Of a stretch of 64,000 nucleotides of DNA, positions 1 to 61,584 are shown in pieces. This DNA is from Syncephalis fuscata S228. Lineage: Eukaryota; Fungi; Zoopagomycota. The notes under the pieces are model-generated. The model ran no database searches. It was not told where the DNA came from and saw nothing but the letters and a program-made list of their open reading frames with translations. Within the stretch, counting starts at the first letter, position 1, and each line of letters starts with the position of its first letter. Position numbers and translations under genes: made by a program. The stretch spans positions 87,724-151,723 of the forward strand of contig JAHLTZ010000045.1 in assembly GCA_025786725.1 (NCBI GenBank), in the 5' to 3' direction.

Positions 1-3000
1 GTGCACCAACGGCTGATGTGCGGCGTACGAAGCGGCGGCCATTGCGAACGACAATTGCCTCAGAGCTGGCTTCAACGCTTGCGGCTTCTTTAACGTCTTC
101 AACCGCGACTTCAGCTTCACGCTGGACTTCTCGGTTCTCTTCAACGCTCCACCAAGTGAACACACGACGTACAAACAAGCGGCCATTGCGTACAACTACG
201 CCAGATGTAGCAACAGTGTCGGCTGCTACCACTGTGGCAAGCGTAGAGCCAGACTCGGCTTCTACTTTAACTACTTCGTCGCTAACTTGCTGGACATCAT
301 CCACGGCAATCTCGACCTCGTCAGTGACCGTCTTGTTCTCTTCAGCACTCCAGCGTGTAAATTGGCGGCGTACAAAGCGACGACCATTGCGCTCAACAAT
401 CGATTCAGAGTCGACATCAATACTGGCTGCTTCTTTGACTTCATCGGCAGCCAACTCGACTTCAACCTGGACCTCTTCGTTCTTTTCAGCGTCCCAACGC
501 GTGAATAGACGACGAATAAACACACGACCATCACGAACGGCTGAGCTGGCAACAATGGCGACGGCTCCGGTAGCTGCTGCAACACCAACAACGGCAGCTG
601 TCGTGGCTGCAGCGGCACTTGTAGTGATTGCTGTCACAAGTCCACTGCCGGCTTCCGACTCGACCTTGGTGACCTCGACTGTAGCTTCTTGCACTTCATC
701 CACGGCAAGTTCGACTTCTTCGGTCACCGTCTTGTTTTCTTCGATGCTCCAGTACGTAAATACACGACGCACAAAGCGGCGGCCATTGCGCTCAACAACC
801 GATTCAGATGTCGACTCGACAGTAGCTGCTTCTTTAATGTCTTCTACCGCAACTTCGACTTCTTGCTGCACTTCCTTGTTCTCTTCAACACTCCAGCGAG
901 TAAACAAACGACGAACAAATAGACGGCCTTGACGGACTGCAACTCCAGCTGAAGCTGCTGTGGCAACTGCGGCTTCGGTCAATATGCTGCCAGACTCGGC
1001 CTCTACCTTAACCACTTCTTCGCTGGCCTGTTGCATCTCATCGACGGCAACTTCGACTTCATCGGTCACCGTCTTGTTCTCTTCAACGTTCCAGTGCGTG
1101 AATTTACGACGTACAAATCGACGGCCATTGCGCTCGACAACGGCTTCGGCCTCGGCCTTGGCGGTGATGTTGGCTGCTTCTTTGACTTCTTCAGCGTCAA
1201 CTTCGACCTCGACTTGGACCTCTTCGTTCTTTTCAGCATCCCAGCGCGTAAACAAGCGGCGAACAAATAGGCGGCCTTGACGGACTGCAACTCCTGCTGC
1301 TGCTGTGGCAACGACTGCTGTGGCTGCTGTGGCTGCAACTGCTGTCGTCAATATCGAGCCAGACTCAGCCTCGACCTTCACCACTTCGTCGGTGACTTGC
1401 TGCACATCGTCCACAGCTACTTCAACTTCTTCAGTCACGGCCTTGTCTTCTTCAACACTCCAGCGTGTAAAGTAGCGACGCACGAAGCGACGGCCATTGC
1501 GCTCAACAATCGTCTCGGACTCTGCATCGACACTGGCTGCTTCTTTGACTTCATCGGCAGCTAGCTCGACCTCGTACTGGACTTCCTTGTTCTCTGCAGT
1601 ATTCCACCATGTGAATACGCGACGAACAAACACGCGGCCCTGTCGGACAACTACGCCAGATGTTGCAAGTGCCGATGTCGTCTCCGACTCGACCTTAATG
1701 ACCTCGCCGTGCACTTGCTGCACCTCATCGGCAGCTACCTCTACATCTTCGCTAACCATTGTGTTCTGTTCGGTGCACCAACGGCTGATGGTGCGGCGTA
1801 CGAAGCGGCGGCCATTGCGAACGACAATTGCCTCAGAGCTGGCTTCAACACTTGCGGCTTCTTTAACGTCTTCAACCGCAACTTCAGCTTCACGCTGGAC
1901 TTCTCGGTTCTCTTCAACGCTCCACCAAGTGAACACACGACGTACAAACAAGCGGCCATTGCGTACAACTACGCCAGCCTTTCAGCTGCTGCCTTAGCGG
2001 TCTCAGTCAGCTTGCTGTTAGACTTGGCTTCCACTTTAACTACTTCAACATTGGCACTTTGAAGATCATCGACAGCAACTTCAGTTGTTTCTTCAATAGA
2101 CTGACTAGTTTCACTGTCCCATCGTCGGAAAGTACGACGAATAAAGCGACGACCGTTGCGCTCAATAATTTTGCTTTCAGAAATGTTGGCAACTGCAGAC
2201 GAAATATCTTCAGCATCTACTTCAATTTCTTTTTGCTCTTCAGCGCCGGTAACTTCGTTCCAGTAGGTAAATGTACGAATAACGTAACGACGACGGACAC
2301 GAACAATAACAACGGCAGTAATAGTGGCTACTTCAGACTTGGCCAGTTCTAAATCATTGGCATCAATACACACTTCACGTTCAACAATGCGTTGCTTAAT
2401 CTGATCCCAAATACTGAATCGACGAACAATGTAACGACGTCCTTTACGCGTAATAACCGAGCCACGTAAAACTTCAGTCTGATCAGCGGCCTTATTAATG
2501 TCGTCTTCAGCCAGCTCAATCATAAAAGAGACCGATTGCCTTGCACGAGAATCCCAGAATCTCATGAACCGACGAATAAACCGACGGCTTTGTCGAATAA
2601 TTACAGAAGCCGATAGGCTAAGTACTTCAGTGTGTGCTGTCTGAAGATCTGAAGATTCTAAATAAATTTCTTCTTGTACTGACTCATTAGTAGCGGCATT
2701 CCAACGAGTAAATTGGCGAACCAAGAATGTACGGCCATCATGGCTAATGGTTTGGAAGGTGCCTTCTTGTGCCAAGGCAGTCTCTTCAATGTCCTGAGCA
2801 GCAATCTCAAGCTCCTTTTGTACAAGCTGGCGAGTGCTATAGTAGTAGACTGTATAGATTCGCTTAACAAAGCGACGACCATGATGAAAAACGACTATAT
2901 CAGCCGGTGAGGCGTTCAACGTCTTGAAAGATTCCTCACAGCAACGAGTAAGTTCCTCAGCGTTAAGTTCCAGCTCTTCTTCTGTCAGCTCATTTGTTTC

Positions 3001-5560
3001 ATCATTCCAACGGGCAAATACACGACGAACAAACTTGTGGCCATGACGGAAAATAATATAAGCACGGCATGTTGCCGCATGTTCTTTGGCTGAAGTTATA
3101 TCATCAAGAGCCAGCTCAACTTCAATAGGAATGGCACGGTCCTTTGAAACACTCCAGCGCATAAATGTATAGCGAATAAAACGTTCGTTATTGCGTAGAA
3201 TAACATGTTCGTTGCTGTTAGAGTATAGCTCTTGACGAGCAAGGTCAAAGGCACTATTGACATCGTCCAAATCTAGTTCAATAATTTCCTGAACAATAGA
3301 GCGAGTTCGAACATCCCAGCGACGGAATACACGGCGAATAAAGCGGCGCTCGTTACGAACCATCACAACTATAGACGATTGGTGAGCGTGAGCTGCAAAT
3401 TCCAGCTGGTCGAGCGGTATCTCAGCTTCCTCGTGAGTAATCGTCTGGCTTTCGTGGTGCCAGCGACTAAAGACACGACGAACAAATCGGCGGCCCGAAC
3501 GAATAATAACTTGTGAGGTGTAAGTGCCAGCATAATTGCTCTTCCTGCGCAAGAGATCACCAGTATCGGCTACGTAGATCTCACGGACTTCTTGGTGCTC
3601 TTGGCCACTTTCTTCGTTCCAGCGAAGAACCATTCGACGAACGTAGCGACGGCCCTGACGTGTGGACACAACATCATCCTTACCAGATGTCTCATTGTCG
3701 GAGTCATCGTTGGCCTTATCCATAACATGTACCATGGTTAAATCTTCACGTTGTGCTTTCTCGTCCCATAAATAGACATAGCGCCGAATAAAACGAATAT
3801 TACCACGAACAAGTACATTAACAGCAAATATAGGATTTAAAGCAATACTGCCGGCACGTTCTACATCGTCGACCAGAAGGTCAAATTCTTCAACAACTGG
3901 CTGACATTGCTTTCGACTCCAACGAGTAAAAGTATAGTGTCCAATGCGCTTGCCATTTTGTTCGGTGATTTTGATACTCTCATGGTTGTTAATAGTAGCT
4001 GCGGCAGCTAGACGCAGTTCTTCTTCATCGAATTCAAATTCATGTTCATTCAAACGAGCTTGCTTGGTGAACCAGCAAGTAAAGAATCGGCGTACAAATC
4101 GACGCGACTGGCGAACAATAACAGCCGTTGGAATGTTGGCAATGGCAACATAAGCCTGTTGTAAGTCATCAATGGCTACTTCGTTGCTTTCATCAACGGT
4201 CTTTTTGGCACGAGCATCCCATTTGCTAATAACATGCTTGTAAAAACGACGTCCATTATGGACAACAATATTGGCACACGAATTGTCGGTACATTCGCCA
4301 ATAATGTTGGCCACATCATCGACAAACATCTCGCCAACTCGGCGGTTCTCACGTCCGGCAACAGAGTCCCAGAAGGTAAATACGCGTCGTAGATAGCGCC
4401 GGCGATGGTGTACAATCGACACAGCGGCCAGTGTAGAGATTTCAGTTTGTGCCTGGCAAAGATCTTCTGACGAAATTGTCAGCTCTCCCTGACCAATACG
4501 GAAAGATGGCTGTCCCAGTAAGTAAATTGGATGCGGACATAGCGGCGACCATTGCGAACAACAATGTTAGCGCCATCACCGCTCAAAGCAATGCCAACAG
4601 CACGCTGTACATCGTTGGCCGACAGCTCAATTTCTTCGCGAGAGCTTGCATTAGATGTTTCGTCCCATCGAATAAATATACGACGAATTAAGCGATGGCC
4701 ACTTCGAATAACAATACTTGCTGCAAGGTTGGATGCCTCGACATCAGCCAGCTTAACATCATCTTGCAACAATTCAGTATCCAAATAGGCAACAGCATTG
4801 GTCTGAACATCCCATAGTGTGTAAACACGATGCACGTAGCGTTGGCCAGCGTGGATTTTGATTGAAGTAGCGTCTTGAGGCTCACTAGCAGCTTGGGCAA
4901 TATCTTCGGCCGCAACCTCGACCGGTTCCTGAATAGCAGAAGATGTATCAGCGCACCAGCGGCTAATGATACGACGAATAAAACGACGGCCATTACGGAC
5001 AATGACTTGGGAAGCGAAACGGGCTGCTTCGGCAATTGCAAGATCAACATCATCAACGGCCAATTCCATAACACTGCGGTCGCTCTTGGCAAGCTTCAAA
5101 TTCCATTGCGAGATAGAATATTTGATAAAACGGCGATTCTTATGCGTGGTATTGATGCCAGAAGACTTGCACCAGCACGACTAACCGCTTCAATAAGATC
5201 GTCGGCACTTAGTTCGAGCTCTCGAGTTTCAATACGAGCTCCCGAAGAGATGTAACAAGCGAAGGACCGGCGAATAAAGCGTCGGCCCGAACGTACAATA
5301 ACACGACCCGTGTCTTTGCTGTCCTTATTGCTCATTATAGTAGTGGTCGAGGCAAGACCAGAAGCCAAAGAAGAGCCGGGTTCGACATCTCGGCTCTTGG
5401 ACTTTTGAGGCTTGCCAAAGAACCAGGACTCAACTCGATGAACAGCAGTAGCTACCCCTTCGACGGCATCGTGAGCAACATGACTAATAATGTTCTCTGA
5501 AGCTTGTTCTTCAGTTACTGGCGTCTTTTCTTCTTGACGAGACGATGGCTGCGATGGCAA
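1..5560 (-). CDS. Giant tandem-repeat protein region (at least 34 copies of a ~50-aa unit, consensus ~VIVRNGRRFVRRxFTRWxxEExxxVxEEVEVAxDDVxxA); 3' end beyond window; probably the C-terminal part of the 7TM ORF upstream
   Basis: ORFs 5096-5560, 4479-5099 and 1969-4422 plus an unlisted minus-strand frame from 1968 towards 1 (VVVRNGRLFVRRVFTWWSVEENREVQREAEVAVEDVKEAA...) share the motif. They abut through 1-nt frameshifts at ~5150, ~4490 and ~1978. Confidence 0.85.
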
Positions 5561-7209
5561 AGGCTTAGTGCTGCTTCTGGTTGTGACGGCGGCTGTTGTG
5601 GTAGTACTGACATGCGTTTTGATGATGATGACGCAGCAGAAGCCGGGGCCGGTTTGGCTTCTATTTCAGTAGAGCCCTTCTTGGATTTCTTCGACTTGCT
5701 GCTACTGCCCCAAAGACGGCTAAAAAACCCGGACTTTTTATCATCGTCAGAGTCGGTCGAAAGCGGATAGGCAATAACATCTGTAGATACAACTGGGGCG
5801 TAGAGCTGCTCCTGAGCGGCGCAATTCAAATCAAGCCAGGAAAAATCAGAATCATAAGTAGTGTGAGATTTGGTGGGTACAGCACTGCTTCGACGAACGT
5901 AGCCATCATCAGACTGAGCACTAAGTGTGCGCCGGAAACGGGCGGGCTGCGAAGCTTCCCATTGACTAAACGCCGTAAGTAGACCATCCACACATTCCCT
6001 CACCTGAGGAGTGCTAGCAATATCGGAAAAGCTTTCACTCGGCGTGACGGCTCCAGAGCGACGGGTTTCGGCAACATTACGCAAGGCAGTAGCAATATCA
6101 AATTCAGTAAGTCCACGATGGCCTGGACGATGGCGATTACGTAGAGATTGCTCTGTTTCGTACACATTAATGTCTTTGCTAGCCAATAATTCATCGGACT
6201 CGTGCAGGGTGGCGAGCGTGCCGTCACTCTGGATAGCCAGGCCAGCAGCAGATTTGGCAGTCATTTCTTGAGAGATTTCAGTCGTTGAGCGACACTGATT
6301 TTCTGACGACATTTGAACAGTGGCCGTTTCACGAATAGTAAAAAGATCACAAGACGAAGGCAGCCAGCGTAGAAGCCACAAATAGTAAATAGCAAAGAAG
6401 AACGGTCCTGCCTGCGAGGTAATATGGGCCGAAAATGAAAGCATATTACTTGCATCATCAGTGCCGAAAAGAGCAACTGTAATATTATGTGATGCATACC
6501 AGCCTACCACTGCGGCGTAGACCAAAGAAAATACAGATAGGCGAAGCTTGAAACGCTTAAGCACAGAATCATTGGCCTTAACGGCTGTAATTGTGCTAGC
6601 GTTTGAATAGATAGTAGTAAAATTACGTAAAGCGGGAATGGTGACCACAAGCCAGGCCGTCATGGAAAGAGCGCCAATGACTGCGTGAATTGGACGTTCT
6701 GCCGATGGCTCTGGGCGACAAGCGACAGCACGACCTTGGCTATCCAATACAAGTGTCTGCCACCAGTCACGGGTCATCCATAAAAATCCAGTAGAAGCCA
6801 CACAACCAGCAACCCAAAGAGATGAAAGCAACGCGCCACGGCCACTTAGCATTGGACGAGCTGAAGTAGCTTGTGTAGCGTAACGCTGCGAATACGCAGC
6901 CAGAGCACCTGTATAGGCCATGCTAGCCATGCGAAGAATAAGCCGAGTTCCATGATTGTTGCGGCACGTATCCACAGTAAGATTGGATGCATTATTGCTA
7001 ACTGAAGCGTAGAGAGCCCGGAGCTCATCCAGCTCACCCAGTAAAGTGGATGCGGCACATGCGAGATCAATCAATACGGCAACAGATACAAGACGCACAA
7101 TTAAATGTTCACGCTTGCGCCACAGTAAAGTTAGACTGTAGGACAAGCCAACAATGGCGCATGCTTGTAGTCCAAGCAATGCAACCGAGAAATCAGGTGA
7201 GAACCACAT
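5515..7209 (-). CDS. 7-transmembrane GPCR-like protein (cAMP-receptor-like/Git3-type topology) with long Ser-rich cytoplasmic tail
   Basis: About seven hydrophobic segments in the first ~285 aa, TM2 'DL', Cys at the top of TM3 (DTC) and in ECL2 (VAC), basic segment before TM6 (LKRFKLRL), then a hydrophilic tail. Confidence 0.65.
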   Translation of the reverse strand: MWFSPDFSVALLGLQACAIVGLSYSLTLLWRKREHLIVRLVSVAVLIDLACAASTLLGELDELRALYASVSNNASNLTVDTCRNNHGTRLILRMASMAYTGALAAYSQRYATQATSARPMLSGRGALLSSLWVAGCVASTGFLWMTRDWWQTLVLDSQGRAVACRPEPSAERPIHAVIGALSMTAWLVVTIPALRNFTTIYSNASTITAVKANDSVLKRFKLRLSVFSLVYAAVVGWYASHNITVALFGTDDASNMLSFSAHITSQAGPFFFAIYYLWLLRWLPSSCDLFTIRETATVQMSSENQCRSTTEISQEMTAKSAAGLAIQSDGTLATLHESDELLASKDINVYETEQSLRNRHRPGHRGLTEFDIATALRNVAETRRSGAVTPSESFSDIASTPQVRECVDGLLTAFSQWEASQPARFRRTLSAQSDDGYVRRSSAVPTKSHTTYDSDFSWLDLNCAAQEQLYAPVVSTDVIAYPLSTDSDDDKKSGFFSRLWGSSSKSKKSKKGSTEIEAKPAPASAASSSSKRMSVLPQQPPSQPEAALSLCHRSHRLVKKKRRQ

Positions 7210-9399
7210 ATTATGTAGTACTTTGCCTGACTAAAACGATAAACCGAGAATCACACAACTTGCTACAAATGTTTGCAAGTATCAGTAATCAGCGTATAAA
7301 GTATTCACAATTAAAAAGATTGGCAAATAGTGCAAGCAAATGATAGTAATTAACAATTGTAATACTACTATCGATTTGGTTACTTTTAAGTTCAAAAGAA
7401 ACGCACCTTTTTACAAAATAGAAATACCGACAAATGTCGTGATAACTATTTGTAGAAAGTAAATAGAAATTACTTCAAAATATAATTTAGCTATTTAATA
7501 AAGCTATATTATAAATTTCGGCAATAGTTGACGAATAAACACGAATAAAAACGCTTTTTTTTAAGGCGTTGGACACCAAACGACAATGGTCAGCGCCAAA
7601 AACAACCACTAATTTTTTATAACGTAAACGAACCAACGTTGTATTTACGTTGTCGAAATATAGACCCACCAATAAAACACGAGTAAAAATGAATATATAC
7701 TAACGCACCCACACACAAATCAGCACAAACCAACACAAAGATACGCGTGAACGCGTAATAATCACAATAATTGCAAAAGCTAATTAATGGCGGGGATTGA
7801 ATGATTGGTCACACAATAAATATGACGTAGCAAATTTAAACCCCGACACCAATACACGAAAAGCAGCTATTTAGTAAAGAATAATTTGTAAAATAGACGA
7901 AACAAACCGGCAATTTAATAAAACGCCAGCGTCTACAGCTTATTTACAAATAAACCGATACTGAATAAACTGCAATAAACACGCAAATCCGCTATAATTA
8001 TGTCGTTGAGATAGAGTGAGAGCTGACTACTTGTTCAGCAAGTAGACACAGTTTGCACTTCACCTTTCTAGGCGTGCGCCAAACTACTTGCACTCTTGCA
8101 AGAAACACGTTGATATACCAGTTATAAGGTGCACTAATATGCACACAAATTGAAAATACACGTAAGTATTGATAATGCACAATAGCAAGAAAGTGCAGTA
8201 AACGTGTAGTAAGTTGGAATAACGGGAAAGAATATGTTGCAAGCACGTAGCGTCAACAACAAGAACAAGAGCGGCGACAAGAGAAAAAAAGGCCTACAAC
8301 TGCGAGAACGTACCCACTTTGTGCGCAAGCGCGTGTGTAACATCGACTTTTGTTAGGCAGGTCGGCTATCTGTATCTGTCTGTGTGTTCGCCACTAATAC
8401 CGAAGATGGTGACGAACGTGCCGAGCCTTTACTGGCTGGCCTTCAATGTCGTCAGCAGTCTATGGCGCTAAGCAGTGTGTCCATTGCAACATCCTGGCCT
8501 GCAGCAGTAGGCGCATATGCCAGCAGTGGCATTCATTTTTGCTTTTTCTTCACTTTTTGCACCGCTATTGCCGATAGATTTCTATTTCAGGTGGCAATAG
8601 CTATTTTTACAACTTGAACTGCCAGTTTAGACATCAATGGGCCAATAGTTGCCTAATCAAAAGTTTTATTTTCACTTTTTTCTTTTAACACTGCAAGATG
8701 CCGCGACAAAAAGACACACCAGCAAAGGATGATCTTTGTCGGGTGGAGATGGACATTCTCATGATAAAAAGACGTGGCAGCCAAAAACGACACTTCTAAA
8801 ACATGTGTGTACCCATATGCATTCGATAGGTGGTCTATTTTGCCATTTCTATCCTATTGGGGCTGAACAGCTATGTGACGTGGCAAGCGCTGCGCTATTG
8901 TTTCGAAATGGTGCCATTTCAGCCTACAGCATGCAATGGGATAGGTGTTTAACTGCATGTATAGGCCTAAACTAAACTGATGGCTAGCTGCTACTTGAAA
9001 TAATGGCACGGATGCACGTGTTGGCCGATGACGTGTATAGTTGTTCCCAATTGGCATGGCAATGGCCTTTTTTGAACAACGCAAGCTCATTTGTGTCCAG
9101 TGTGAAGTGTGCCGCTATCGACACCACTTATCAGCAATTAACGTACTAACCATCAAAAGCATTAGTAAGTGCTATTATTGTCTGTTTGTTGCTGTTACAG
9201 ATAGTATTTAATGGCATAATCTGGTAATAACGTGTACGGATAGTAGTGCAAAGTAAAACAGATGAACAAATAATTGAAAAAATTCGTATGATTATTTTCG
9301 AATGCAAGCATTGTTAAGGCAAATATCAACTACCACAAGACCAACTATTTTACTTAGTGTGATACTATTATAACGTATTTATGCCACATTTTAGTTGAA

Positions 9400-9605
9400 T
9401 TGTACTTTGACTCCCACATTATGAGTCCCCAAAGCAAAACTCGTTTCAATGGAAGTCAGCGCTGTTATGCATAACAAACATAGTTACAATGTTTTCATTT
9501 AACTACTTGCAATTCACGAGGCCTGTTGTTGTTGTTGTTGGCCATGTGTAGAAAGATTGATTGAATGTTAATAAAAACCATATGATTGCGATTCCACGTC
9601 GTTTC
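9400..9605 (-). mobile_element. Right end of Fanzor-bearing TIR element: decayed Fanzor C-terminus (9495-9605) plus ~95-nt 3' end and TIR
   Basis: Minus strand reads TTWNRNHMVFINIQSIFLHMANNNNNRPRELQVVK* (RuvC-III WNRD motif with D>N). It ends in AATGTGGGAGTCAAAGTACAA, the reverse complement of the family TIR. Confidence 0.75.
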
Positions 9606-10669
9606 CTATTACTTCTGTCGCTTGTTTGTCATACTGCACATCAACTATTACGTGATCTGCTCCTTTTCTATCTTATCTCAGTTCAATTGCGCCACACTTG
9701 CTTATTGTAATCACAATATTTAATCCTAATAATTTCCGGTTCTTTTATACTTGCAGATCATTTTTGACAAAGCTATTTAACAATCCAGTATAAAAAGCCT
9801 TTTATTTTGTTTAACGTTGTTACAATTAAATTAATATTGTAACATGCATAATACTACATTTACTAATAAACAGTAGTGAGTATGTAACAAATAGCCATTC
9901 GTTACGGAGAATAAACGTATAAAATATTTATGCATTTTCCCACGATACTTTAAGCTTTGTCCGGGATTAATTCAAAGTTTATTTTAGTAAAAATGCAATT
10001 CTTTCTTTTTACTTCACGTATAATTTACACTATCACAAATTGCATCTGGTGCTATTGGACTTTGAAGTTCATAGCTCTAAAATGGGTGCAAATGACAAAG
10101 AAAAGTAATTAAATAAAAGAAAGATCAAGGTTAATATAATTATTATAAAAGTCGTTTATTAAATAGCCACTTTCCTATAGCCAATCTGACTAAATAAATG
10201 GCATTTAAACAATTAATAGCATAATGACAATATATATATATATATTAAAGCAATAATAAATATAACTAATTAAACAATTAATAGAATAATGAACTGACAA
10301 ATAAACAAACAATTATTAACTAAGTAGTTAAATAAAATGATTTAATGAATTGGTGGAGAAATAGTGGAAAAAGGTAGAAGCACAAAGCAAAATAGCTTTA
10401 TTTATTTAATATGTGTCAGGCATATTCGATTCATATACAGCACATTGGATACCACACAGCTGCATTACATGAATTATTAAACAGTATTTGGTATAAATAG
10501 ATAGCATATGGTTATTAGCGGTAATAGAAAAAACAAAATGAATATAATGGTTAAGACATTGGTAGAGGGAAAACTTGTATAGACTAAAGCAGATGCACGC
10601 GGTGGGTTTATTACTATTGCAACTGCTGAGATTTTGACACTATAAAAAGACTAGATCAAGCTAGCAATT

Positions 10670-11116
10670 GTTTACAAAGATGAATGGTAGTCTAAAGTGC
10701 TGCTGTACTGTTTCGTTGCACTCAATCCTATGTGTAGAGGCACTACAAATGAGCAGGCATAATGGCTGATCCGGTTGCAACCCCAACGGCCGTGGAGCGC
10801 TGCCACGTGTAGCCTTGGAAAATCGGTGATCGATGAGCCGCACTAAACACTTGTTGATGATAGTGCGCCTCGATTTCTGGTGATGGATACGCGTTCTTTA
10901 ATGGAACAATAGCCATACGCGAGGCAAAGAAAGCTGGATGGAACCGAGCTGGGTCGGCTTCTGTGGTATAAAGAATAATACTCGTCATTAGCTATAACCA
11001 ACTAACGCGAGACTGCGCAATGACTATACGTCATCAGCAGCTGTCCAGGTAGACAGGCACTTGCCTTGACGCAATATAGGCGAAAGTAATTCCGAAGCAT
11101 TGCTAAATAACGACAT
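10670..11116 (-). other. Possible small orphan gene or pseudogene (GC-richer island with broken ORF)
   Basis: Coding-like composition inside an AT-rich intergenic region: MSLFSNASELLSPILRQGKC..., then YTTEADPARFHPAFFASRMAIVPLKNAYPSPEIEAHYHQQ. It is interrupted by stops or frameshifts, and no family is recognised. Confidence 0.25.
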
Positions 11117-11477
11117 ACTGAGAATGGGAAATGGTAAAACGATTAGAGTAGAATGAAAGAAAAGAAAAAGGCTACGGTGATGTAATTGCTACATATTTCC
11201 GAGCATCATTGTAATGAAAACCACGCGGTTATGCACAACGATTATAATGGTTTTTAATAAAATTATTATAAATCAATTGCTTTTTACGTAAAAATTCAAC
11301 CCATTGTTAGCAATACGTTTGGTAATATGTATTATCCGGTTATTTTCAATTCTTTACAACAAAAAATAACACTAAACGATTCCTAATATTTTTTAAAACA
11401 CAAAGAAGCACTTATATTAACTACATGATTTACATTTAAAATAGAGAATTGCTACTGTTGATTAATTAGAAAGCTAT

Positions 11478-12232
11478 TATACTTTGAGTCTCTAGCTTCA
11501 AACTGGGAACAAAAAGCTTCATAACTCAAATAAACCGTCAATCAACTTTTAATACTGAAAAGTGTTATTTGTTGAAGCAGTGTCACATCAACTCCGATTG
11601 AATTAGTTGAAGTTGAGCCAGTCCACACTATTTCAATACTCTATATCAGTGTTAATAAATGTTATAACATTTCGTGTTGCTTACAATAAAACATAATAAA
11701 TAGATAAATTATATTAATATGCTAATCCATATTATTGTTACTTTAAAGTATTCAAAGCATTATAATTGATACTTAATGTCATTCACCATCCAGTTCCATG
11801 TTCAATAGATTAAATGTTATTAAAAATAGGTATTTGATCACCAAATCATATTAAATATTAATAAATTCAACTCAATCGTATAATAATGCAGTTTATTTAA
11901 CTCAATTAACAAGTATTAAAATTAAAAGCTAAAAATGAAATGGTACACAGCATACATGTATATATATTGGTGCAACAATACTAACACATCAAATAGAACA
12001 ATTAACTAAATAATTATTGATATCATTGCTAAAGAGTGTAAGTTGTATTGAGATGTTTAAAATAACAGTTACTGATAAAATGTTATTTTACATTTTGTTT
12101 TATGGAAATGATAATGGACAACAATATTACGTTAATGTTTATTGTGAACGATGATTTAAACACAACCCAATTTAATTAAATCATTAGATTAATTGCGTAA
12201 AAAGATTTGCTGCTCTGAAGGATCAAAGTAGA
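11478..12232 (+). mobile_element. Non-autonomous MITE-like member of the Fanzor-associated TIR family (no Fanzor coding remnant seen)
   Basis: Left end TACTTTGAGTCTC...AATAAACCGTCAATCA is homologous to 18887 and 62853. Right end ...AAAAGATTTGCTGCTCTGAAGGATCAAAGTA is homologous to 20100-20277 and 21325-21510. Confidence 0.7.
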
Positions 12233-12432: not shown

Positions 12433-13278
12433 TACTAAAAAAAGAGCAAATTGATATGCATCTATTACGGCATAGACCTTTATTAAAAAATTGCAATGTC
12501 ACATTGATAAGCAGATTATTACACTGTGTATAAAATAGTACAACGTTATAAATGATGCATTACATTTGTCGACAAGAAAATTAATATTTTTGAATTCAAT
12601 CGTCATTGCAATAAATTATTATGCCACTAGATTTATTTACACTTCGATCTCTTATACATGTTGTATTTTCCTATTGTATTGGACACTTAATTGTAAGCTA
12701 GAACGCAACAAGTACCCCTCTTCTTACATTATGCTTATAATTTTTGTTATTATAAATGAAATACTTTCGCCATATGGTATGATTTTTATAAGCAGTGTAG
12801 TGTCTACATATTTACACTGTATCGATCATAAATCAACATATGATCTAAAAACTTGCCAATCCTTGTCCCTATCAATGCCACAACACGCCCAGCTGTTAAA
12901 TGTTATGGAATCTTACGGTATTTAATTTAAATATAACATAGTTCAATTGAAGCGTCTAACACTGTTATTTATTATAGGTACACGCACCAAAAACTGTTAA
13001 AGATCCAATACAAGCTACAGCAGGGCGGACAGTGAAATTGGAACTTGGTATTGGCATTCAAATTATATCTTCCATGTCAGTCTGGAGCGTATATTGAATC
13101 ATTATTGGTTCAGTGTTTGTCACAGGTTATTGCTGATAAGCTATAGCTGGTGCTTGTGACTCCAAAGGCAGGCGCTTGACGTTGGCGTTCACATAAACCA
13201 AAACGATTCGTTGCTTCGCTTTTCTTTTTGCTATTATTTCACGCCTTGTCTACAAGATTTATATGTCACAACAACAAC

Positions 13279-14051
13279 ATGCTTGCCTATTACTATAACG
13301 CGGACACCAATGAAGACCAACGTGGTGAGCACCAATATGTGCCTTCACGTCCCGTCACCATTGAACAGCTTAAAAGCGTCGGTGTGCTTTATTGGCGACT
13401 AGATTCCAGGGACCATATGGAAAAACTGGAAACCATTACTAAAGAACGTGCCTATAGCAATCGCGACGAGGTATGCTTAAATACATCTTATAAATACCAA
13501 ATACATTAACATTATTATTATTATTATTATTATTATTGATTTCTTTAAGATTGTCATCTCCCCAGATCGTTTGCCAGATTACGAGGAAAAGATTAAAATG
13601 TTCTTTAAAGAGCAAGTATTATTTATTGATAAACACATAAAATGTTAATCAAGCTATTTCCATTTAGACATTTGCATGAAGATGAAGAAATTCGTTTATT
13701 CTAGATGGATCAGGTTATTTCGATGTTCGTGATAAAGACGATGAATGGATTCGTATCTATATGGAACGCGGCGACCTTATTGTGCTACCAGCCGGTATCT
13801 ATCATCGTTTTACCCTTGATAATACCAACTTTATTCATGCTATGCGCTTGTTTAAAGATGTATGTATTCTAATGCTATAATTTATTGGAATACAACTAAC
13901 ACGTGTGTTATTAATTAATAGGAACCAAAATGGACAGCAATTAATCGGTAACTAATATCGTCTGTGCTAATATGATACTAATAGATTTAACAGACCTGTA
14001 GCTGACGAAAACACTTTTCGTGTAGAGTATTTGCGCACAATTCACACATAG
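13279..14051 (+). CDS. ADI1: Acireductone dioxygenase (methionine salvage), multi-exon
   Basis: [36 protein letters not shown] and AMRLFKDEPKWT motifs across exons. Confidence 0.95.
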
Positions 14052-14109
14052 TCGTAATAAATTGTTATTTGTCCTATTTCTTTTGCTTTTACTCTATTTG
14101 CTTTTCACA

Positions 14110-15099
14110 ATGACTGAACCACAACGTCACTGGACGCAGGAACAGCTTGTTTCCGACGCAGTATCCAAAAAGATATTGTTACTTGGTTGCATGAACAAGC
14201 ATCTAACGATGTAAGCTGCTTAAAGACAACATTCTACGTGACGCTTAACTTTGTCCAAGTTTTTAGTATTGCGTAAACTTAATGGACAAGTAAAGAACGT
14301 AGCAAAGACTCAGAGCAAAGACGCACTGATTGCTGCTTACGAAGCGCTGTTTGTAGAAAAGGCATTTCGGTAAATCAGCGTACTTTGATTGTCAAGTAAG
14401 ATCTAACCAGAGATTTGTATCCGCAACAGAGCAACAGACGAAACGCCGGCCGCTAAAGCCAAAAAGGCTGAGCCCAAACCCGATACTGCTGCCGCTAATG
14501 ATGCCGCTGCATCTATCACAGCTGTTGAGGAAGAACAAGGACCTCCCAAATACACCAAAGCCATACTGAAGAAGGGCGATCGAGTTAACTTTCCTAAAAA
14601 AAATGAGCTTGTATCAGTTTGGTAGGTAACGTTATAGCAGCAATAATAATAGATTAAATATTTTATCAATCATTGTAATATCTATCACTATTATTTGTTA
14701 TTAATATAGGTATAAAGGCACATTAGAGAATGGCACAGTATTTGACACAAATACAGAAAAGAAGCGAGGAAAAAAGCCTATTCCATTGAAGTTTAAAGGT
14801 TTGTAACGCTTCTGTCTTAATATACAATTTAGAATTAACACACCACACAACCATCCAGTTGGTACAGGCCGTGTCATTCGCGGATGGGATGAAGCATTGC
14901 TTACAATGTCCAAGGGCGAAAAGGCTCAATTAACCATCGAACCTGAATGGGCTTATGGCAAAAAGGGTGCGCCTGATGCAGGGTAAGTTACATTTAATAT
15001 AAAACGTAAAAATATCTTATATTGTTGTATACTTGTGTTTGTAGCATTGGTCCAAATCAACGGCTTATTTTTGAAGTAGAACTAGTTTCTATTGAATAA
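14110..15099 (+). CDS. FKBP3: FKBP25/FKBP3-type peptidyl-prolyl isomerase (N-terminal helical domain plus FKBP domain), multi-exon
   Basis: WTQEQLVSDAVSKKDI N-domain; GPPKYTKAILKKGD...WYKGTLENGTVFD...VGTGRVIRGWDEALLTMSKGEKA...IEPEWAYGKKG...LIFEVELVSIE*. Confidence 0.9.
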
Positions 15100-15212
15100 T
15101 GCTAATAACGCTTTTATTTCAACTAATAAAAAACATTTACCATTTACTTTTTACTTTTTATTTTTTATTTCACGTCGTATCATTTTAAACTAAATACATT
15201 CTACTTAACACA

Positions 15213-16587
15213 ATGAATCAGCCACAGAAGCGTCGTCCTTTGGGATTGAAAAAGGCGTCAGAAAGTAAAAAAGCCAAGCAGGCTGAAGAGAACCAGGAAG
15301 AACAGACGGTGTGGCTGCAAGGCGGTGAAGAAGCCGACGACGAAGTGAGTGAAGCAGCGGTTCTTTTGAAAAATGCTGTTGCAATGTTAGGTAGGTTCGA
15401 CTATAGTTTGTTAAATAGCTTTATAGTAACTATTTTATAATTATTCATATACGATAGCGGATGACCCAGATAGAGCACAACTACTATTGCAAGGCACAGT
15501 CCATGAATGTGATCGTATTTTAAGAAACACAACGGATGCATCCCCACTTCCAGGTCGTTTCTATGCCACCTATGCACTGGCGCTGTGTGAACTTGGAGAG
15601 CTGTGCGCCAGTGACTCAATCGAAGAGTCCATTGGTTTCTTACAATTGGCGGATGATTTTGCGCAACAAGGGCAAGATATGACCGAGAACCAAGATACAG
15701 TGGATATCTATGAAACGTGTATTGCTAGTGGGCGTGTATCGCTTTCTCAAGTAAGCTAAATTGAAAATAAAACCATTGCAGATAGCTCACTAAATGTATA
15801 GGCACGTATAATTCTTTATCAAGCTGAACAGGAAAATGAACAGGGTTCAAATGATACGATTCCAGATGAACAATTGAATAATATTGACCAACTAGTTCAA
15901 AAAGCACATCAATACTTTACACAAGCCATAGAAGTAAAGGCTAAAACAAAAGATACGAATCCAACCGACTATACTGATGCAATACAACTAGCTGGTAGTC
16001 TACTGCAAACTCACGCAGACTTGCGAGATGATTGGAAAGGTCGCAATCAATGGAATACTTTGGCAATTACGCTATTTAAGACCATTGGTAAGCCAAGCTT
16101 ATAAGTATTTATTTGATTAATATAACCATTCAATAGAAACGAGTGAGGGTACAGCCTTAATTTGTCAAAGTATAGGTGCAGCATTTATGTCACAAGCAAA
16201 CTGGTGGCTAGAACGTCAAGACGACGACGATGAAGACGATGAAGACGATGAAGCCGCTAGTGATAAAGACAAGTCAGATGTTGGTAAAATAGTTGAATTA
16301 CTTCATAAAGCCGAAGCGAACTTTACACAAGCCAAACAATGGGCCGAAAAAGTCCAGAATCCATAACAACTGGCTCTATACTTGTACAATTGGCAGAATG
16401 TAGCATTAATCTTGGCAATGTTGCGGATACTGAAAATGATGAAGCAGCATGCTACACACGTGCAGCTGAATATCTTCAACAAGCCATTGGTTCTGGATAT
16501 TCTTTACCAGAACAACTATCTGCATTCCTAAAAGAATGGAATATGGATAGTGGTGATGATGATGATGATGAAAGTATGAGTGAATAA
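15213..16587 (+). CDS. ETT1: ETT1/Nro1-like protein (enhancer of translation termination / negative regulator of Ofd1), multi-exon
   Basis: N-terminal KRRPLGLKK and GTVHECDRILRN motifs, helical repeat body, acidic C-terminus. Confidence 0.7.
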
Positions 16588-17037
16588 ACCATTTTTATCA
16601 TATTAATTGACTATTTTCATTTATTTATTTCAATATACATTATGTATTGTAATTTAGCTAATTTTCTTTTTTATTTCTATATTATATTATATATTATTTT
16701 GGTATTTTTATTTAATTTACATCTTTTATTTATGTTTAAACAATAAAAAACAGTTTTTACATGGCGACTAACCTTGATAACATAAATTTAGTTGCTGTTA
16801 TCTTTATGCCACTAGATAGTTAATACTAGTGTATAATAAGGTTAACTTAGATAATAAATTCATAATAACTATAAGCAGACCTTTTCCAGATATGGATTAA
16901 GTAGACTATGGCCAATGTTCCGTGTTTATCGCTTGCCATCACACTTACACACTTCGTCATCACTCATTACTACTCTTTTACCTTACTACTTTTGCGTGGT
17001 TTATTCTTTACTAGCGTCGGTCGACTTCATCCACACG

Positions 17038-18686
17038 ATGGATGCATCTAAAACTTTAGTTGTTGATAATGGTACTGGTGTAAGTGCTAACCTACATACT
17101 TTAACGACATTGGTTAACACGTCTATACGTGCATACACGCACCACCTACTACGCCCTGCTTGTTTCGAGCTAGTTTGCCAAGGTAGGCTATGCCGGCTCT
17201 AACTTTCCCGAATTCGTCTTTCCGTCTGTCGTGGGCCGTCCTATTATTCGTGCTGAAGAGAAAATTGGCAATGTCGAGGTGAAGGATATTATGGTGGGCG
17301 ATGAAGCTGCCGCCTTGCGTAGTATTCTCCAAATGTCATATCCAATGGAAAATGGCATTGTTAAGAACTGGGAAGATATGTGCCATGTATGGGATTATAC
17401 ATTTAATGAAAAACTACGTATCGACCCAAAGGATAGTAAGATTTTATTGACCGAACCACCAATGAACCCGCTAAAGAATCGCGAGAAAATGGCCGAGGTT
17501 ATGTTTGAAGAGTATGGATTCCAGGGCATTTATGTGGCAATTCAAGCTGTATTGACCCTTTATGCTCAAGGTAAGCCATTAGATAATGGCATTAATTGTG
17601 ATCTTGTTCTAATAATAACAATTAAGGTTTATTAACGGGTGTGGTAATTGACTCTGGTGATGGTGTGACGCATATTGTGCCGGTCTACGATGGATTTTCT
17701 ATGCCGCATCTTACGCGGCGACTTGATGTAGCGGGAAGAAGCGTAACACGCTATTTGATTAAGCTGCTATTGTTGCGCGGATATGCCTTTAATCGAACGG
17801 CTGATTTCGAAACTGTTCGTCAAATTAAGGAGAAGTTATGCTATGTTAGGTGAGTAACATAGAAAATAAATAAACAAATAAATAAGCTATAGCATCAACG
17901 AACTACTTTATCTAGTTACGATCTTGACCTTGATCAAAAGCTGGCCAACGAAACTACTGTACTAGTAGAGAATTACACAGTAAGTTTATCTATGTTGTTA
18001 TTTATATATAAATACTAAATATGGGTATAGCTGCCAGATGGTCGAGTTATTAAAGTTGGATCTGAGCGATTTGAAGCACCTGAATGTTTGTTCCAACCTG
18101 AACTAGTTGATATCGAATCAGTGGGCATGGCCGGTAAGTCAATTGTAACAAATAGGGGACATAATTATAATAACTGTATATAATATATAATACAGAGCTA
18201 TTGTATAACACCATTCAAACTGCCGATATTGATATTCGATCTGAATTGTATAAGCATATTGTTCTTTCTGGGGGTTCTACAATGTATCCAGGTCTACCCA
18301 GTCGATTAGAAAAGGAAATTAAACAACTATATCTTACTCGTACACTTGATGGAGATATTGAGCGTCTTAAAGTAGGTTATTTATATATATATATATATAT
18401 AGAACGAGTATATTGATTAATATGATGTCATGATCATTTTTTTACTTATTAGAAATTCAAGGTACATATTGAAGATCCACCACGTCGTAAACATATGGTA
18501 TTCCTTGGTGGTGCCGTATTAGCCGATATTATGAAAGATAAAGATACTTTTTGGGTTACGCGACAGGAATGGCAGGAACAAGGGATACGAGCACTGGTAA
18601 GCACAAAAGCAATCAATAATAATAACAACAATACAATTAACACAATGAATACAATTTTTTAGGATAAACTCAGTCACAAAGCTTAA
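17038..18686 (+). CDS. ARP2: Actin-related protein 2 (Arp2/3 complex), multi-exon
   Basis: [88 protein letters not shown]. Confidence 0.97.
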
Positions 18687-27513: not shown

Positions 27514-29122
27514 TTAAGTGTGGAAAAGTTGATCCACATTATCGATGGCTTTACGTGGATCATCACGATAATAAACAAAATGGCCTTGTAATGCCGCGGC
27601 ACTTAATGCTTTACCGTGTTGTTTACTTTGAAGACGACAAGCGGCTACAAATGCATCAGCCTCGGTGTTATGTGTTTCGTAAAAGCGTAGGAATAGTTCA
27701 CGTATTTGGTGGTCACTAACATCACCAAGTAGCGCTTTAACATCCACTCGACCGGGTCTTATAAGTGCCGAATCTAATCGTTCTAAATGGTTGGTGGTCA
27801 TAAATATAATACGTTCTTCAGCGGCTGCCACACCATCCAATGCATTTAACAGTCCACTAAATGTTACCATTGAAGCATATCTAGTATCTAATGGTTAATA
27901 AAATGTATATATTATTATTATTGTTATGCCTATACCCTTGCTTATCCGATTGTATACGTTGACTAAATGCTGCATCGACATCTTCTAGTAATAGAATACT
28001 TCGTTCGGGCGTATTGCCCAATAAATGATTTAATCGATCATCTGTTAGTCCAGGTTCACTTAGATTCAATAAGCATATATTGTAACCAAGTTCGCCGGCC
28101 AATGCTTGAATGAATGAACTTTTACCACTACCTGGTGGTCCATATAATAGGTAGCCTCGTCGATAAGGAATACCTAGGTATTTTATGCTTAGTACTACTA
28201 TTATTAGTTAGATAGTATGGTGTACTACCTCTATTTGTATACCATTGGCCATTGGCAATAAATGACTTGACATCGTTGACTAGATGCTGTTTAAGATTTA
28301 GATCGAGAATGACCGAGTCTAAAGGCCGGCGTTTACGTGGCTGACCAAAAGGACGCCATTCTGGTCCATAACTACAATAAATAACGGTTTTGCCTTCTTG
28401 ACTTGCTAAGGCACGCGATCGGGCCTCCACTAGCATGTCATTGAGTACAGTACGATCACGCGATAGTGTGGTAATCATGATAGTTTCATAAGGACTACCG
28501 GTGGATAGATCCATTAAACGGCTATCACGGCGTCGTTCTACCTAATAAATATAATATAATAAATTATAGCGTGTTTTAATATAATGTAAATATTAATGTC
28601 ATCATAATGATATCGATAACAACAATATAATCGATTTACCTGCATCCAAGCACCATGCCAGCGAAACCAATGCTTGCCAGGTCCAGGCACTAGAGAGAAT
28701 TCAGTTGTTACTGCACCATTTTCGTGTTGTTTAAACGCTGTTTGTACGGCAAGGTGAGGACTATGTTGTTGTGCACCCCGATCAATCATCCAGTTAAGTA
28801 GCCAGGGATAGCTTTTATCACGCGACGGAATTTCCAGCGTAACAAGTAGACGACGTTGTAGTAGCGTACCCGTTTGCATAATACCACGTCTTAATAGCGA
28901 AAGTGCTACACCTACACCAACAAGGCCTAAACCGGCGCCAAAAAGCGGATTCGTCGACCAAGTATTTAATAAACTATTGCTAGAGCTATTATTACCCTGT
29001 TCTAATTGAATAGCTTTATGAGAAGGTAGCGTGTCGGTTGCCGTTACTGTCGGTGTTACTGTTGTTGTTGTTGGTGGTGGTGGTGGTGCTGTTTCAGCAC
29101 CTATAGAAGAAGATACGTCCAT
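27514..29122 (-). CDS. BCS1: Mitochondrial AAA chaperone Bcs1, multi-exon
   Basis: [91 protein letters not shown]. Confidence 0.97.
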
Positions 29123-29404
29123 TGTTAGTGTAGTATAGCTGGAAAAAGAAGAAACAAATCTATTGTAATAATATTTAGAATTACTACTTAATATTAGTAA
29201 ATGTGTTTGTAGTAATAAACAATTAAATCAATTATTAAGACTGTGATGACGATAATCATAACAATAGTAATACTAATAGGTTAATATTAATAGCCAATTC
29301 ATTTAAATCGTCTTTCCTTTATTCACCTTATACCTGCTCATCAACCGTGCACTACTATCTTTATTCTTTATTATCTGATAAGTAAAAGAGCAACAAACGA
29401 CAGT

Positions 29405-32301
29405 ATGGCGTCAATAGATAGCCTGTTCGAGTCATCTACATTTGACGTGTTTGTACCAGCTCTGCCACTTGACCAGGAAACAAGCCGTCCACTCCTAGAT
29501 GACCTAGTACTGGCCCATGAGCTTGACTATGCACTATTCGGTAAGTTATTCAACAATTCATATACTTGATTGAATAACAATGTTTAGATGAAAAGTTGAC
29601 CGTTTACGTAATGGGTCGGGTTCAGTTGCCAGAATCCGCGTCTTCTACAGTACAAGACAATGAGAATGACGACAACGATAGCAACAACAACAACAACAAC
29701 AACAATAGTAACAGTAATAATAAGAGCAAGCCAGACCAGGATGCTACAGTGCCTATTGCTATACAGTCGTTGTTTAAGAATCTAACCGTACAGCTCGATG
29801 CTACTATTGTCGAACCTATGGCACCGTCATCGCCTGTATTTTCACCATCCGATTCAAATACGAGTAGTTTGGGCACACCTACAGGCCGACCCGTATCTCC
29901 ATTACCGCCTGGACAACAACCAGTGCGTATGGATCCATCTACGCCTACACCTACACTACAACCACCATCGCCACATGCTAGTGCACCTACATCGCCGGTA
30001 ATAGGACCTAGTGGAACACCACAACGTACATTGCCACGCCGATCCTCGTCTATTCGTAATGTTTCGTTGTCGCCAGGCCTTGGACCGCGTCGTAATAGTG
30101 AAATGAGACAACTAAGCGATGGATGGGCTGGCACTCAAATATTCCAAGAGAAACAACTTGCTCGAGATAGTCTAACTAGTGATGGTGATATTCAACGCTA
30201 TAATGAGCAATGGGGCTGTGTATTTCAATTTACCGTGCCAGTTTGTAGGTTATTAGATACATATTAGCTGTAATAATAATGATTACTAAATTATAATGTT
30301 ACAATAGCATTTATTAAAATTGGTGATCGTTCCCGTACTCTTTTGTTAACAGCAACGATAACCAAACTAAGGAGCTCGGTTATGGGCGATGAAAAGAACA
30401 TAGCTAATATGGCTGAAAGTAAAATAATGATGACAACGACAGTGCCACAAATAGTTGCTAATGGTAATGGTACTGATGCTATATCAGGTAAGTAGATTGG
30501 AATTGTATTAATATTGGCTAATGTATATTGTATTTAATAAGATGCACCAATATCTGAAAGTCCACGACGTGGCTCAATAGCCTCAATTACCTCTATTAAT
30601 GCCGATGTACCCGATGTAGTTATAGACGATTCGAACGATTCAAGTCGTGTACCCACTGCCACTCCAGTGTCTCGATCGACATCTGGTATACAGGCCAATG
30701 AAGGCATTATTAAAAAGTCGGCCACAAAAACGATGTCCGTTAGATCGGCTGTCAACACAATTGCCAAAGTGACCTGGACTTCATTACTTGAAAATACACT
30801 TATTCTAGCCATTGATATTGATAATGAAGTTAATGCATCACACGACATTACACTAAATAGTCTCAAGGTTGATATTACTAGTGCAGTATTAAGGCCCTGT
30901 GGACCACACTTTGATCAAGTAAGTTTTAATAATATTTATAATATGAATATAAGTAATGATTTATTTAATTAGGCGGTTAAATTGTTACCTGGTGATCAAT
31001 ATACACAATTATATCATTTGACCATTTTGGATGATGATCGTAAGCCGTCAATTCAGCCACCACCACCACAAATGATGGTGCCATCATTTGCTAGACCTGG
31101 ACCGGATGGTGAATTTCCACAACTATTTACACCAGCACAAATCGAGAGTAAATTACGAGAAGTGCGTTTGCAGTTATCGTGTACAGTCCATACTGCCACT
31201 GAAGAGATTATGAAACGAGAAGTCAACTCAGACTGGCGATTCTTTGTTGATTCTAGCGATGCGGCAAAACGCCGTGTACAAGAACAATTTAGATCAGGTG
31301 GAGCACGTACTGTGCGTGTATTTCCTCCTTCAGAGCCTATGACACCGCAAGGTGGACCTCGTCCTGGACGACCTAGTGGTGGTAGTGGCACACCCAGTGG
31401 CGGTGGCACCCTAATATGTTAAGTCCATCTGCTCCTAATTCTACTCGACCTATGCTGGCCGTCACACAGGTGCTGGTGCTGGTGGTGCCGGTGGCGATAT
31501 TAAAGGCCGTGGTAGACGTGCATTTACACTCGATAGAACAAATGAAGACTCGTCATTTGGTGGACCTGGATTAGTTATTTCATTTTCAGGTAAATCGACT
31601 AATGTTACAATTACATTGATACTAATTATTGTATTAAATATAAATATGTTTAGTTAATGGACCAGTTATTTATGAACAAGAATTTGTCGTTGAAGCATTT
31701 CTAGTGAATCGATCACATCGTACAAAGAATTTTACTGTGCTTATTCCAAGTCGACAAAGTGTTGCAGTAATACACAGCGATATCGACGGTAAATAGCTAC
31801 AACAACAGTTTACTATTCGCTAATACATAGTCAATAATAGACCAACGATAGTAACAGAGACGCGTGCTGCAGGACTACATGTAGATACACATATGAGAGG
31901 TGATAGTAAGTAGAAGTGACTAATAGTTATGTAATAGTGTAAATTAATAATAACAATAACGTATATTCAACATGACATTATAGCCATTATTGAGAAACAA
32001 CGACGTAGTCTACAAAACCATGCATCTCTAGTCTGTCTCGACAATCATATCCGTTTAAGGTAAGTATCAATACTGTTATTGGTAATATTGAGTTATATAG
32101 ATTACAAATTAATTGTTATAATATCTGTTTCTTATTACTAGTCCATTGCAACCAGGTGCATGTCTTTCGGTCTATTTACACTTTGTTCCATTCCGTGAAC
32201 ATTTCAACACTATTGAATTAGTACAATTGTTTGACAAGGATACAGGCTCAATGACCAGTCTACGCGATGTTTTGGATGTTTATGTACAGCCCAGTGCATA
32301 G
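29405..32301 (+). CDS. TRS65: TRAPP II subunit Trs65/TRAPPC14-like, multi-exon
   Basis: C-terminal SLVCLDNHIRL.PLQPGACLSVYLHFVP...IELVQLFD..TG....LRDVLDV, LLPGDQYTQLY, GLVISFS, EFVVEAFLVNRS. Confidence 0.65.
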
Positions 32302-61197: not shown

Positions 61198-61584
61198 AGA
61201 AAACGCAGTATAGTTTTTTAATGTTAATAACGGTGAATACTCAAGATGAGTACTAGTATTGGTAGTTGCAGTCAAGTGAATATTTATTCAGGAGAAATAG
61301 AATAGTTACCAAAGATAACTCGTAATGATAACTCAGACGTATAGGCTAGGCGTTGCTGTTGTTAATGTTACTATTATTATTGCACTGCTGTTGATATGAC
61401 TGCTAATATGACTATTATTATATTAATAGTTATAATTAATATTATGAATACTATTGCTAAAATGTTGCTAGTAGTAAAAAGGGGAAGAAAAGGAATAAAC
61501 GGCTGGTTTAGTTAATGAAACGATATAGATAACCAAAAACTGGCTTTATTAAATTGTCCGACAATCATATGACCCATTCCATGC

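Follow-up and report, generated by a model that had tools for sequence, protein, structure and literature searches.

The adhesion G protein-coupled receptor (GPCR) ADGRV1, or VLGR1, is a giant of ~6,300 amino acids (aa) whose 35 Calx-beta repeats lie on the extracellular, N-terminal side of its membrane domain, and in fungi Num1, with near-identical repeats of 64 aa, and Leashin are giant cortical or organelle tethers that likewise carry tandem repeats. In the GPCR-bigrams of oomycetes and amoebae (GPCR-PIPK/RpkA and others) and the plant 7TM-RGS proteins, a seven-transmembrane (7TM) domain is followed by an accessory domain at the C-terminal side (PMC6033456). Here we describe a gene of the fungus Syncephalis fuscata S228 that invites comparison with all of these. 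It occupies the minus strand at positions 1-7209 of the window, by which we mean the whole stretch of 64,000 nucleotides analysed, the last 64 kb of contig JAHLTZ010000045.1 (assembly GCA_025786725.1), and it continues past the window edge. An original prediction, made from the DNA letters, had read the locus as a 7TM GPCR-like receptor fused to a giant cytoplasmic repeat array. Our sequence comparisons indicate that the seven-helix open reading frame (ORF) and the repeat ORFs that follow it are indeed one gene. Intronless throughout, it would encode a giant integral membrane protein with a short N-terminus outside the cell, seven transmembrane (TM) helices and a cytoplasmic C-terminus, in which a Ser/Thr-rich linker of ~350 residues would lead into an array of at least 59 modules of 48 residues each.

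Like the bigrams and the 7TM-RGS proteins, the predicted protein has an N-terminal seven-helix domain and a C-terminal part, here predicted to be cytoplasmic, in one polypeptide (PMC6033456), and a single ORF joining the two is found as a continuous frame in the related S. pseudoplumigaleata. In those proteins, however, the accessory is a single catalytic or regulatory domain and the 7TM part is recognisably GPCR-like, whereas here the accessory is a non-catalytic array of more than 3,300 residues of a new module and the membrane domain matches no GPCR family. None of the catalytic domains of bigrams (PIPK, AC, PDE, kinase, INPP) is present, the pieces of the tail being without a Pfam domain, and because the accessory part of a bigram is a single catalytic or regulatory domain while the tail here is a repeat array, the protein falls outside the bigram definition. 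ADGRV1 is similar in being giant and in joining dozens of beta-rich tandem repeats to a seven-helix domain, but its repeats are N-terminal, extracellular and of a known family, while the present array is C-terminal, predicted to be cytoplasmic and unrelated in sequence. The functional analogy that we favour is with Num1 and Leashin, which are also membrane-attached and have very long, recently homogenised tandem repeats, although they attach through PH or other peripheral domains rather than seven helices and show no sequence or fold relation to this protein. The statement of the original prediction that no GPCR of this architecture has been described is fair for a C-terminal cytoplasmic array, given that the repeats of ADGRV1 are extracellular and N-terminal; 7TM proteins with other C-terminal domains are known. 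If our reading holds, a giant non-catalytic array in place of an enzyme would be an unusual addition to the seven-helix proteins with fused cytoplasmic parts.

In the assembled sequence the gene is spread over five overlapping open segments (Table 1). As had been predicted, the 564-aa ORF overlaps the next one and three further single-nucleotide shifts join the repeat ORFs into one frame, estimated then at ~2,400 aa and counted here as ~2,404 codons, which reaches the window edge without a stop. The frame changes between the segments are all in one direction, with the pattern of a 1-nt deletion, and the break positions first proposed (~5566, ~5150, ~4490 and ~1978) all lie within overlaps of the open frames and could be refined to the intervals in Table 1. 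An extension leftwards along the contig, suggested as a way to find the C-terminus, was made with a fetched locus (L001) that reaches 4.5 kb past the window edge. The frame continues, open for at least 4.5 kb with five further breaks of the 1-nt-deletion type, and is still open at the end of L001; the C-terminus lies farther on, and the lengths of gene and array, at least 3,900 codons and 59 repeat units from the start codon to the end of L001, are lower bounds. Stop-free runs of 865, 670 and 1,244 codons were found. A chance origin of the frame is excluded by the 35 copies of one 48-aa unit in the segments (hidden Markov model (HMM) domain E-values down to 1e-24) together with a colinear alignment to an ortholog.

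Table 1. Features of the joined gene; positions refer to the window unless marked aa (residues of the protein) or L001
Feature	Position	Strand	Remarks
Open segment 1	7209-5518	-	564 codons from ATG; seven hydrophobic/helical segments; stop at 5515-5517
Open segment 2	5665-5099	-	overlaps segment 1
Open segment 3	5180-4482	-	overlaps segment 2
Open segment 4	4566-1972	-	overlaps segment 3
Open segment 5	1981-2	-	overlaps segment 4
Predicted seven-helix membrane domain (aa 1-284)	6358..7209	-	hydropathy, AlphaFold secondary structure, 75% identity to RKP27335.1
Predicted TM helices	aa 8-29 (TM1), 36-57 (TM2), ~87-106 (TM3), 124-144 (TM4), 174-194 (TM5), 221-240 (TM6), 266-283 (TM7)		
Ser/Thr-rich linker, ~350 aa	5312..6357	-	holds frame break 1; conserved islands, e.g. 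RFRRTLSAQSDDGY, ENIISHVAHDAVEGVATAVHRVESWFFG
Diverged array, 22 units of 48-54 aa	2035..5311	-	HMM hits
Start of higher-order tandem repeat	1..1977	-	copy 1 = 205-1977; copy 2 starts 1-204
Frame break 1	5564..5568	-	1-nt deletion type; causes the apparent stop of the 564-aa ORF; read with X, aligns to ortholog ...QQPDAFKPLPSQPSS...
Frame break 2	5166..5170	-	1-nt deletion type; AVSRAGAxKSSGINTTHKNRRF aligns to ortholog AVSHAAVKSSGVNTTHKNRRF
Frame break 3	4500..4508	-	1-nt deletion type, within a repeat unit; YWDSHxFRIGQGELTISSEDL vs ortholog YWDAHNFRIAHDELAISLEDL, gapless
Frame break 4	1978..1983	-	1-nt deletion type; junction of diverged array and higher-order repeat; AKAAAExAGVVVRNGRLF vs ortholog AKAAADKAGLVVRRGRMF, gapless
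Five breaks beyond the window	L001 17191, 17296, 20997, 21002, 21250		

It is this ortholog that carries the case for a single gene. A phmmer search with residues 1-300 against 1.84 billion representative proteins had two matches only: the query protein and a hypothetical protein of 1,766 aa, RKP27335.1, from the mycoparasite S. pseudoplumigaleata (Zoopagales), which is 75% identical over the membrane domain. On the scaffold of that species (L002), a frame with the same MWFSPDFSV start extends without stop or shift over 1,078 codons, from 8393 until a stretch of N begins at 11627, and this uninterrupted piece (8393-11626) takes in membrane domain, linker and first repeats. The successive pieces of the window frame align with it colinearly (A 1-549 to ortholog residues 1-556, B 20-164 to 531-678, C 5-225 to 681-901 and D 21-156 to 902-1037), and residues 187-863 of piece D align at 66% identity to the ortholog frame across the N gap, where the DNA has the opposite orientation. 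The ortholog crosses the first three junctions in one ORF, and the fourth is covered beyond the scaffold gap. When the read-throughs are aligned with an X at the break (database and fold searches used the segments separately), all four window junctions match the ortholog and zero residues are lost. Because the ortholog reads through the first three junctions without interruption and through the fourth beyond the gap, the fusion is real, as the original prediction of one intronless gene had it, and the same fusion is present in a related genome at the RKP27335.1 locus. Two independent genes, a receptor ending at the 5515 stop and a separate repeat-protein gene downstream, would fit the stop that the assembled sequence has at 5515-5517 and the position of the first ATG of the next frame (MSNKDSKD...) just ahead of the first repeat unit, but such an arrangement is extremely improbable, as the ortholog frame is continuous over this junction, the window frames match it on both sides of the break, and the repeat part would still require at least three more frame repairs. 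Introns were considered as the source of the frame changes and rejected, those of this genome being AT-rich GT..AG introns of 50-120 nt. Since no residues are lost at the junctions relative to the ortholog, the breaks are single-base frame breaks and not introns.

Public annotations of the gene are wrong in both species. In S. fuscata the database splits it into a 564-aa model (window 5515-7209) and a spliced 441-aa model inside the repeats (2658-4329, or L001 12881-14552), and calls no gene over the higher-order repeat. The model RKP27335.1 is right only to about residue 1037, its C-terminal half being a translation opposite to the true repeat frame (L002 11427-14606, KZ989225.1). Past the 825-nt N gap the L002 DNA is inverted with respect to what precedes it, which suggests a chimera from scaffolding or amplification.

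Comparison of the two species also bears on how the gene has evolved. Across all blocks (membrane domain, linker, and the repeats before and after each break) amino-acid identity is 60-80%, nonsynonymous divergence (dN) 0.12-0.32, and synonymous sites are saturated. The linker is 60% identical to that of the ortholog, with a dN of 0.32 and synonymous divergence (dS) near saturation; the diverged array is 66-80% identical unit for unit, with a dN of 0.12-0.23 and dS saturated. The GC content of third codon positions (GC3) is 0.36-0.42 here and 0.77-0.92 in S. pseudoplumigaleata, despite the 60-80% of amino acids kept, and the two genomes agree in the start codon of this gene and in its neighbours (Arp2-ARD-this gene). 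Judged from these comparisons, the gene has coded for protein over its full length, in the frame inferred here, ever since the two lineages diverged, and it is conserved under purifying selection in two Zoopagales genomes of very different base composition, with GC3 near 0.4 and 0.85.

The tail is a tandem array even longer than could be seen in the window, in keeping with the very long repeat tail first proposed. From the linker to the end of L001 a profile HMM of the unit detects 59 units, of which 35 lie within the window. The first 22 (window 5311-2035) are ~30% identical to one another, with the consensus xVVxRNGRRFVRRxFTRWxxExxxxVxEExELxxDDVxxA, while that of the array is xVVxRNGRRFVRRxFTRWxxEENKxVxEEVEVAVDDVQQA; charge is distributed unevenly along the unit, its first 22 residues having a net charge of +4 to +5 and the other 26 of -6 to -8. 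From window position 1977 downwards the units are organised into a higher-order tandem repeat of 1,773 bp (591 codons), with at least 2.6 more copies beyond the window and 99.6-99.9% identity between copies, and by this sequence identity the distal array has recently been amplified as a 591-codon higher-order repeat. Each copy comprises 10 units in five back-to-back pairs; the linkers between the pairs are 2-38 aa long and rich in Ala/Val/Thr, and the diverged part of the array has none of this kind. Over 19 residues the linkers of the higher-order repeat reach a Kyte-Doolittle hydropathy of 1.9-2.1, in the range of membrane helices (as at aa 215-233 and 464-482 in the 1981-2 frame), and part of the tail could therefore associate with the membrane. 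Long plus-strand ORFs over the repeats (18-932, 960-1280, 1497-1997 and others, the longest of 304 aa) are not genes: they arise as antisense by-products of a coding strand that is repetitive and codon-biased.

The fold of the unit was modelled with AlphaFold2 from a two-unit query and an alignment of 23 rows, in which pairs of units that do not overlap were drawn from the two species. The di-unit model has a mean pLDDT of 90.3 and a pTM of 0.77 (all five models 87-90), and in each unit places strands at 3-7, 10-21 and 26-35 and a helix at 36-43. The unit is thus confidently predicted to consist of three antiparallel beta strands and a helix, the basic hairpin (RNGRRFVRRxFTRW) being followed by an acidic strand and helix. 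Foldseek returned nothing significant for this model (best E 0.15 against PDB and 0.08 against BFVD, a collection of predicted viral structures; TM-scores 0.2-0.4), its weak matches including proteins of the Whirly, PUR and SsgB types. The beta-beta-beta-beta-alpha repeats of PUR and Whirly are also small beta meanders with a helix that pair into one domain, and the paired units of the higher-order repeat bring to mind the PUR domain with its two repeats; PUR and Whirly repeats differ, however, in having four strands rather than three, in matching only at Foldseek E-values of at least 0.15 and TM-scores of 0.2-0.34, and in sharing no sequence similarity with the unit. Searches by sequence gave only sub-threshold noise in Pfam for all five pieces and no relative in PDB for the di-unit profile (best E 0.79). 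Protein database searches with piece D (candidates of 476-1,514 aa) and with a four-unit profile (candidates of ~110-350 aa) found no relatives of the repeat, and scans of metagenomes and prokaryote genomes with an alignment of the closer units yielded pattern matches and no repeat relatives. The module would accordingly represent, at the level of a model, a confidently predicted small fold without recognisable relatives. So far, among the genomes and metagenomes searched, the protein has been seen only in Syncephalis-type fungi (Zoopagales), and this narrow range marks it as a possible part of the biology peculiar to these obligate mycoparasites.

The membrane domain is less easily placed. 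Hydropathy gives five strong peaks and two weaker segments, TM3 and TM7 being weakly hydrophobic, and the AlphaFold secondary structure consists of seven long helices and a hairpin (152-164) in the second predicted outer loop, albeit from a two-row alignment and with a pLDDT of 43 and a pTM of 0.30. To that extent the domain does model as 7TM, as had been expected. The ratio of K+R to D+E is 10/2 in loops 1, 3 and 5 and 6/11 in the N-terminus and loops 2, 4 and 6, and this positive-inside count favours a topology with the N-terminus out and the C-terminus in; potential N-glycosylation sequons lie both in predicted outer loops 1 and 3 (73, 76 and 242) and in predicted inner loop 5 (196, 203 and 213), and do not discriminate. 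A true ligand-sensing GPCR acting through heterotrimeric G proteins, with the array as a signalling platform in the manner of a bigram whose enzyme has been replaced by a scaffold, would agree with the seven helices and their predicted orientation. Also consistent with a GPCR are Cys82 and Cys164, a pair in predicted outer loops at the place of the disulfide between TM3 and the second extracellular loop, and the QRY at 108-110 at the inner end of TM3; these are conserved in both species but, resting on two sequences only, are leads at most. About 45 of the top 50 Foldseek matches to the membrane model are GPCRs, yet their E-values are 0.28-2.3 and their TM-scores 0.2-0.34, the model itself has a pLDDT of 43, and since most seven-helix chains in PDB are GPCRs, such a match list is to be expected for any loose seven-helix model. 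No GPCR family was matched in Pfam even at E<=10, a sequence profile search of PDB gave nothing relevant (best E 8.4), and a literature search on Syncephalis together with GPCR found nothing. A G protein-coupled receptor proper is doubtful in our view. Of the original description of a 7TM GPCR-like receptor, the seven helices stand, the topology is favoured by the loop charges, and homology to GPCRs is not supported, with no sequence match and a poor fold model: from its sequence the membrane part is a seven-helix, receptor-like domain of no recognised family.

Where the tail lies determines what it might do. The intracellular tail of the original prediction, a tether or platform, fits the positive-inside rule, while the hydropathy of the linkers leaves some doubt. 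An array that is extracellular, or that threads the membrane repeatedly, would suggest a surface adhesin of the mycoparasite. Syncephalis attaches to host hyphae, and the weak hydrophobicity of TM3 and TM7, the membrane-like linkers of the higher-order repeat and the NKT sequons in the units could be read in this way. We nevertheless think it very unlikely, for the loop charges are distributed as expected of seven helices and an internal C-terminus, a signal peptide is absent, and the module is very rich in Arg and Glu, poor in Pro and without conserved Cys, as is typical of intracellular proteins. Our best guess for the function is a membrane-anchored cytoplasmic scaffold or tether, in which the seven-helix domain would anchor, and perhaps gate, a long rod, or a string of paired modules, with regularly recurring charges that would act as a cortical tether or scaffold at the membrane. 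A bolder version, to which we give little credence, would see a new receptor-fusion class confined to haustorial mycoparasites. In this case a ligand-responsive seven-helix domain would directly control the beta-beta-beta-alpha array of more than 3,300 residues. The basic hairpins of the array, evenly spaced and rich in aromatic residues, would have RNA, single-stranded DNA, acidic phospholipid or some such anionic polymer or surface as their binding partner, and the protein would form a membrane-anchored platform, on a scale of about a hundred nanometres, that couples surface sensing to local tethering.

All 9 frame breaks in ~3,900 codons are 1-nt deletions, with no insertion, no longer indel and no nonsense codon among them. 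Within the higher-order repeat, copies 1 and 3 are intact at exactly 1,773 bp, and relative to them copies 2 and 4 have 2 and 3 private 1-nt deletions and only 1 and 3 substitutions, respectively. Neutral decay is expected to produce far more substitutions than indels, indels of mixed size and sign, and several stops. As every break is a 1-nt deletion, nonsense codons are absent and the sister repeat copies are intact, assembly error is favoured, and we consider it likely that all nine were introduced in this way. The original prediction had also thought the shifts to be probable assembly errors, on the ground that conserved housekeeping genes nearby are broken by the same single-base deletions. 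The conclusion survives and the argument does not: short GT..AG introns, rich in AT, account for the interruptions examined in ATP synthase alpha (35803-37472), Arp2 (~17040-18660), BCS1 (27517-29227), prolyl oligopeptidase (55233-57879) and a Rab-like GTPase (59966-61287). No frameshift was found in these genes, and none was seen in ~15 kb of coding sequence of the window outside the giant gene. Breaks enriched here relative to other window genes, three of them in locally unique sequence, together with a database annotation that calls the 564-aa product, would suit a gene recently inactivated or truncated in this isolate, with real frameshifts, a 564-aa seven-helix protein as its product and the repeats as a decaying remnant. 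That history is unlikely, given that ~3,300 codons downstream of the first break are free of nonsense codons, that all nine lesions are of one kind, that the ratio of deletions to substitutions between sister copies (~1:1) is far above that of normal mutation, and that purifying selection has long acted on all blocks. If the breaks are assembly errors, the case shows that a long-read assembly can concentrate its frame breaks in a single repeat-rich gene and leave the neighbours clean.

As a whole, the explanation that we find reasonably probable is one intronless giant membrane-protein gene whose breaks are assembly deletions and whose tail would serve as a tether or scaffold. Several points weigh against it. 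The concentration of breaks in this gene is not explained by a uniform error rate, and those at 5566, 5167 and 4505 are in sequence unique to the locus, where polishing ought to work. The hydropathy of the linkers, up to 2.06 over 19 aa, makes a wholly cytoplasmic tail less than certain, and the proposed role as tether or scaffold is conjecture, no motif of known function having been seen.

Elsewhere in the window, a MULE/Mutator transposase remnant (51522-52916, plus strand) extends over overlapping frames and holds the only other break of the 1-nt-deletion type found; its MULE domain is broken between 52235 and 52256, which leaves too little room for an intron. At two places a single stop divides a pair of long same-frame open segments, at 30970-30972 on the plus strand (30541-30969/30973-31419) and at 48270-48272 on the minus strand (48273-48575/47853-48269). 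Upstream of the giant gene the plus strand carries, in order, ARD, FKBP (BTHB plus FKBP_C), Nro1 and Arp2 (13200-18660), with several short AT-rich introns, and at least ARD and Arp2 are shared with the S. pseudoplumigaleata scaffold. In the Rab-like GTPase, on the minus strand, the G4 (VKAD) region is separated from the C-terminal part by an inserted stretch, rich in Ser/Thr/Asn and over 200 residues long, and the Ras profile matches only positions 31-118 of its large exon.

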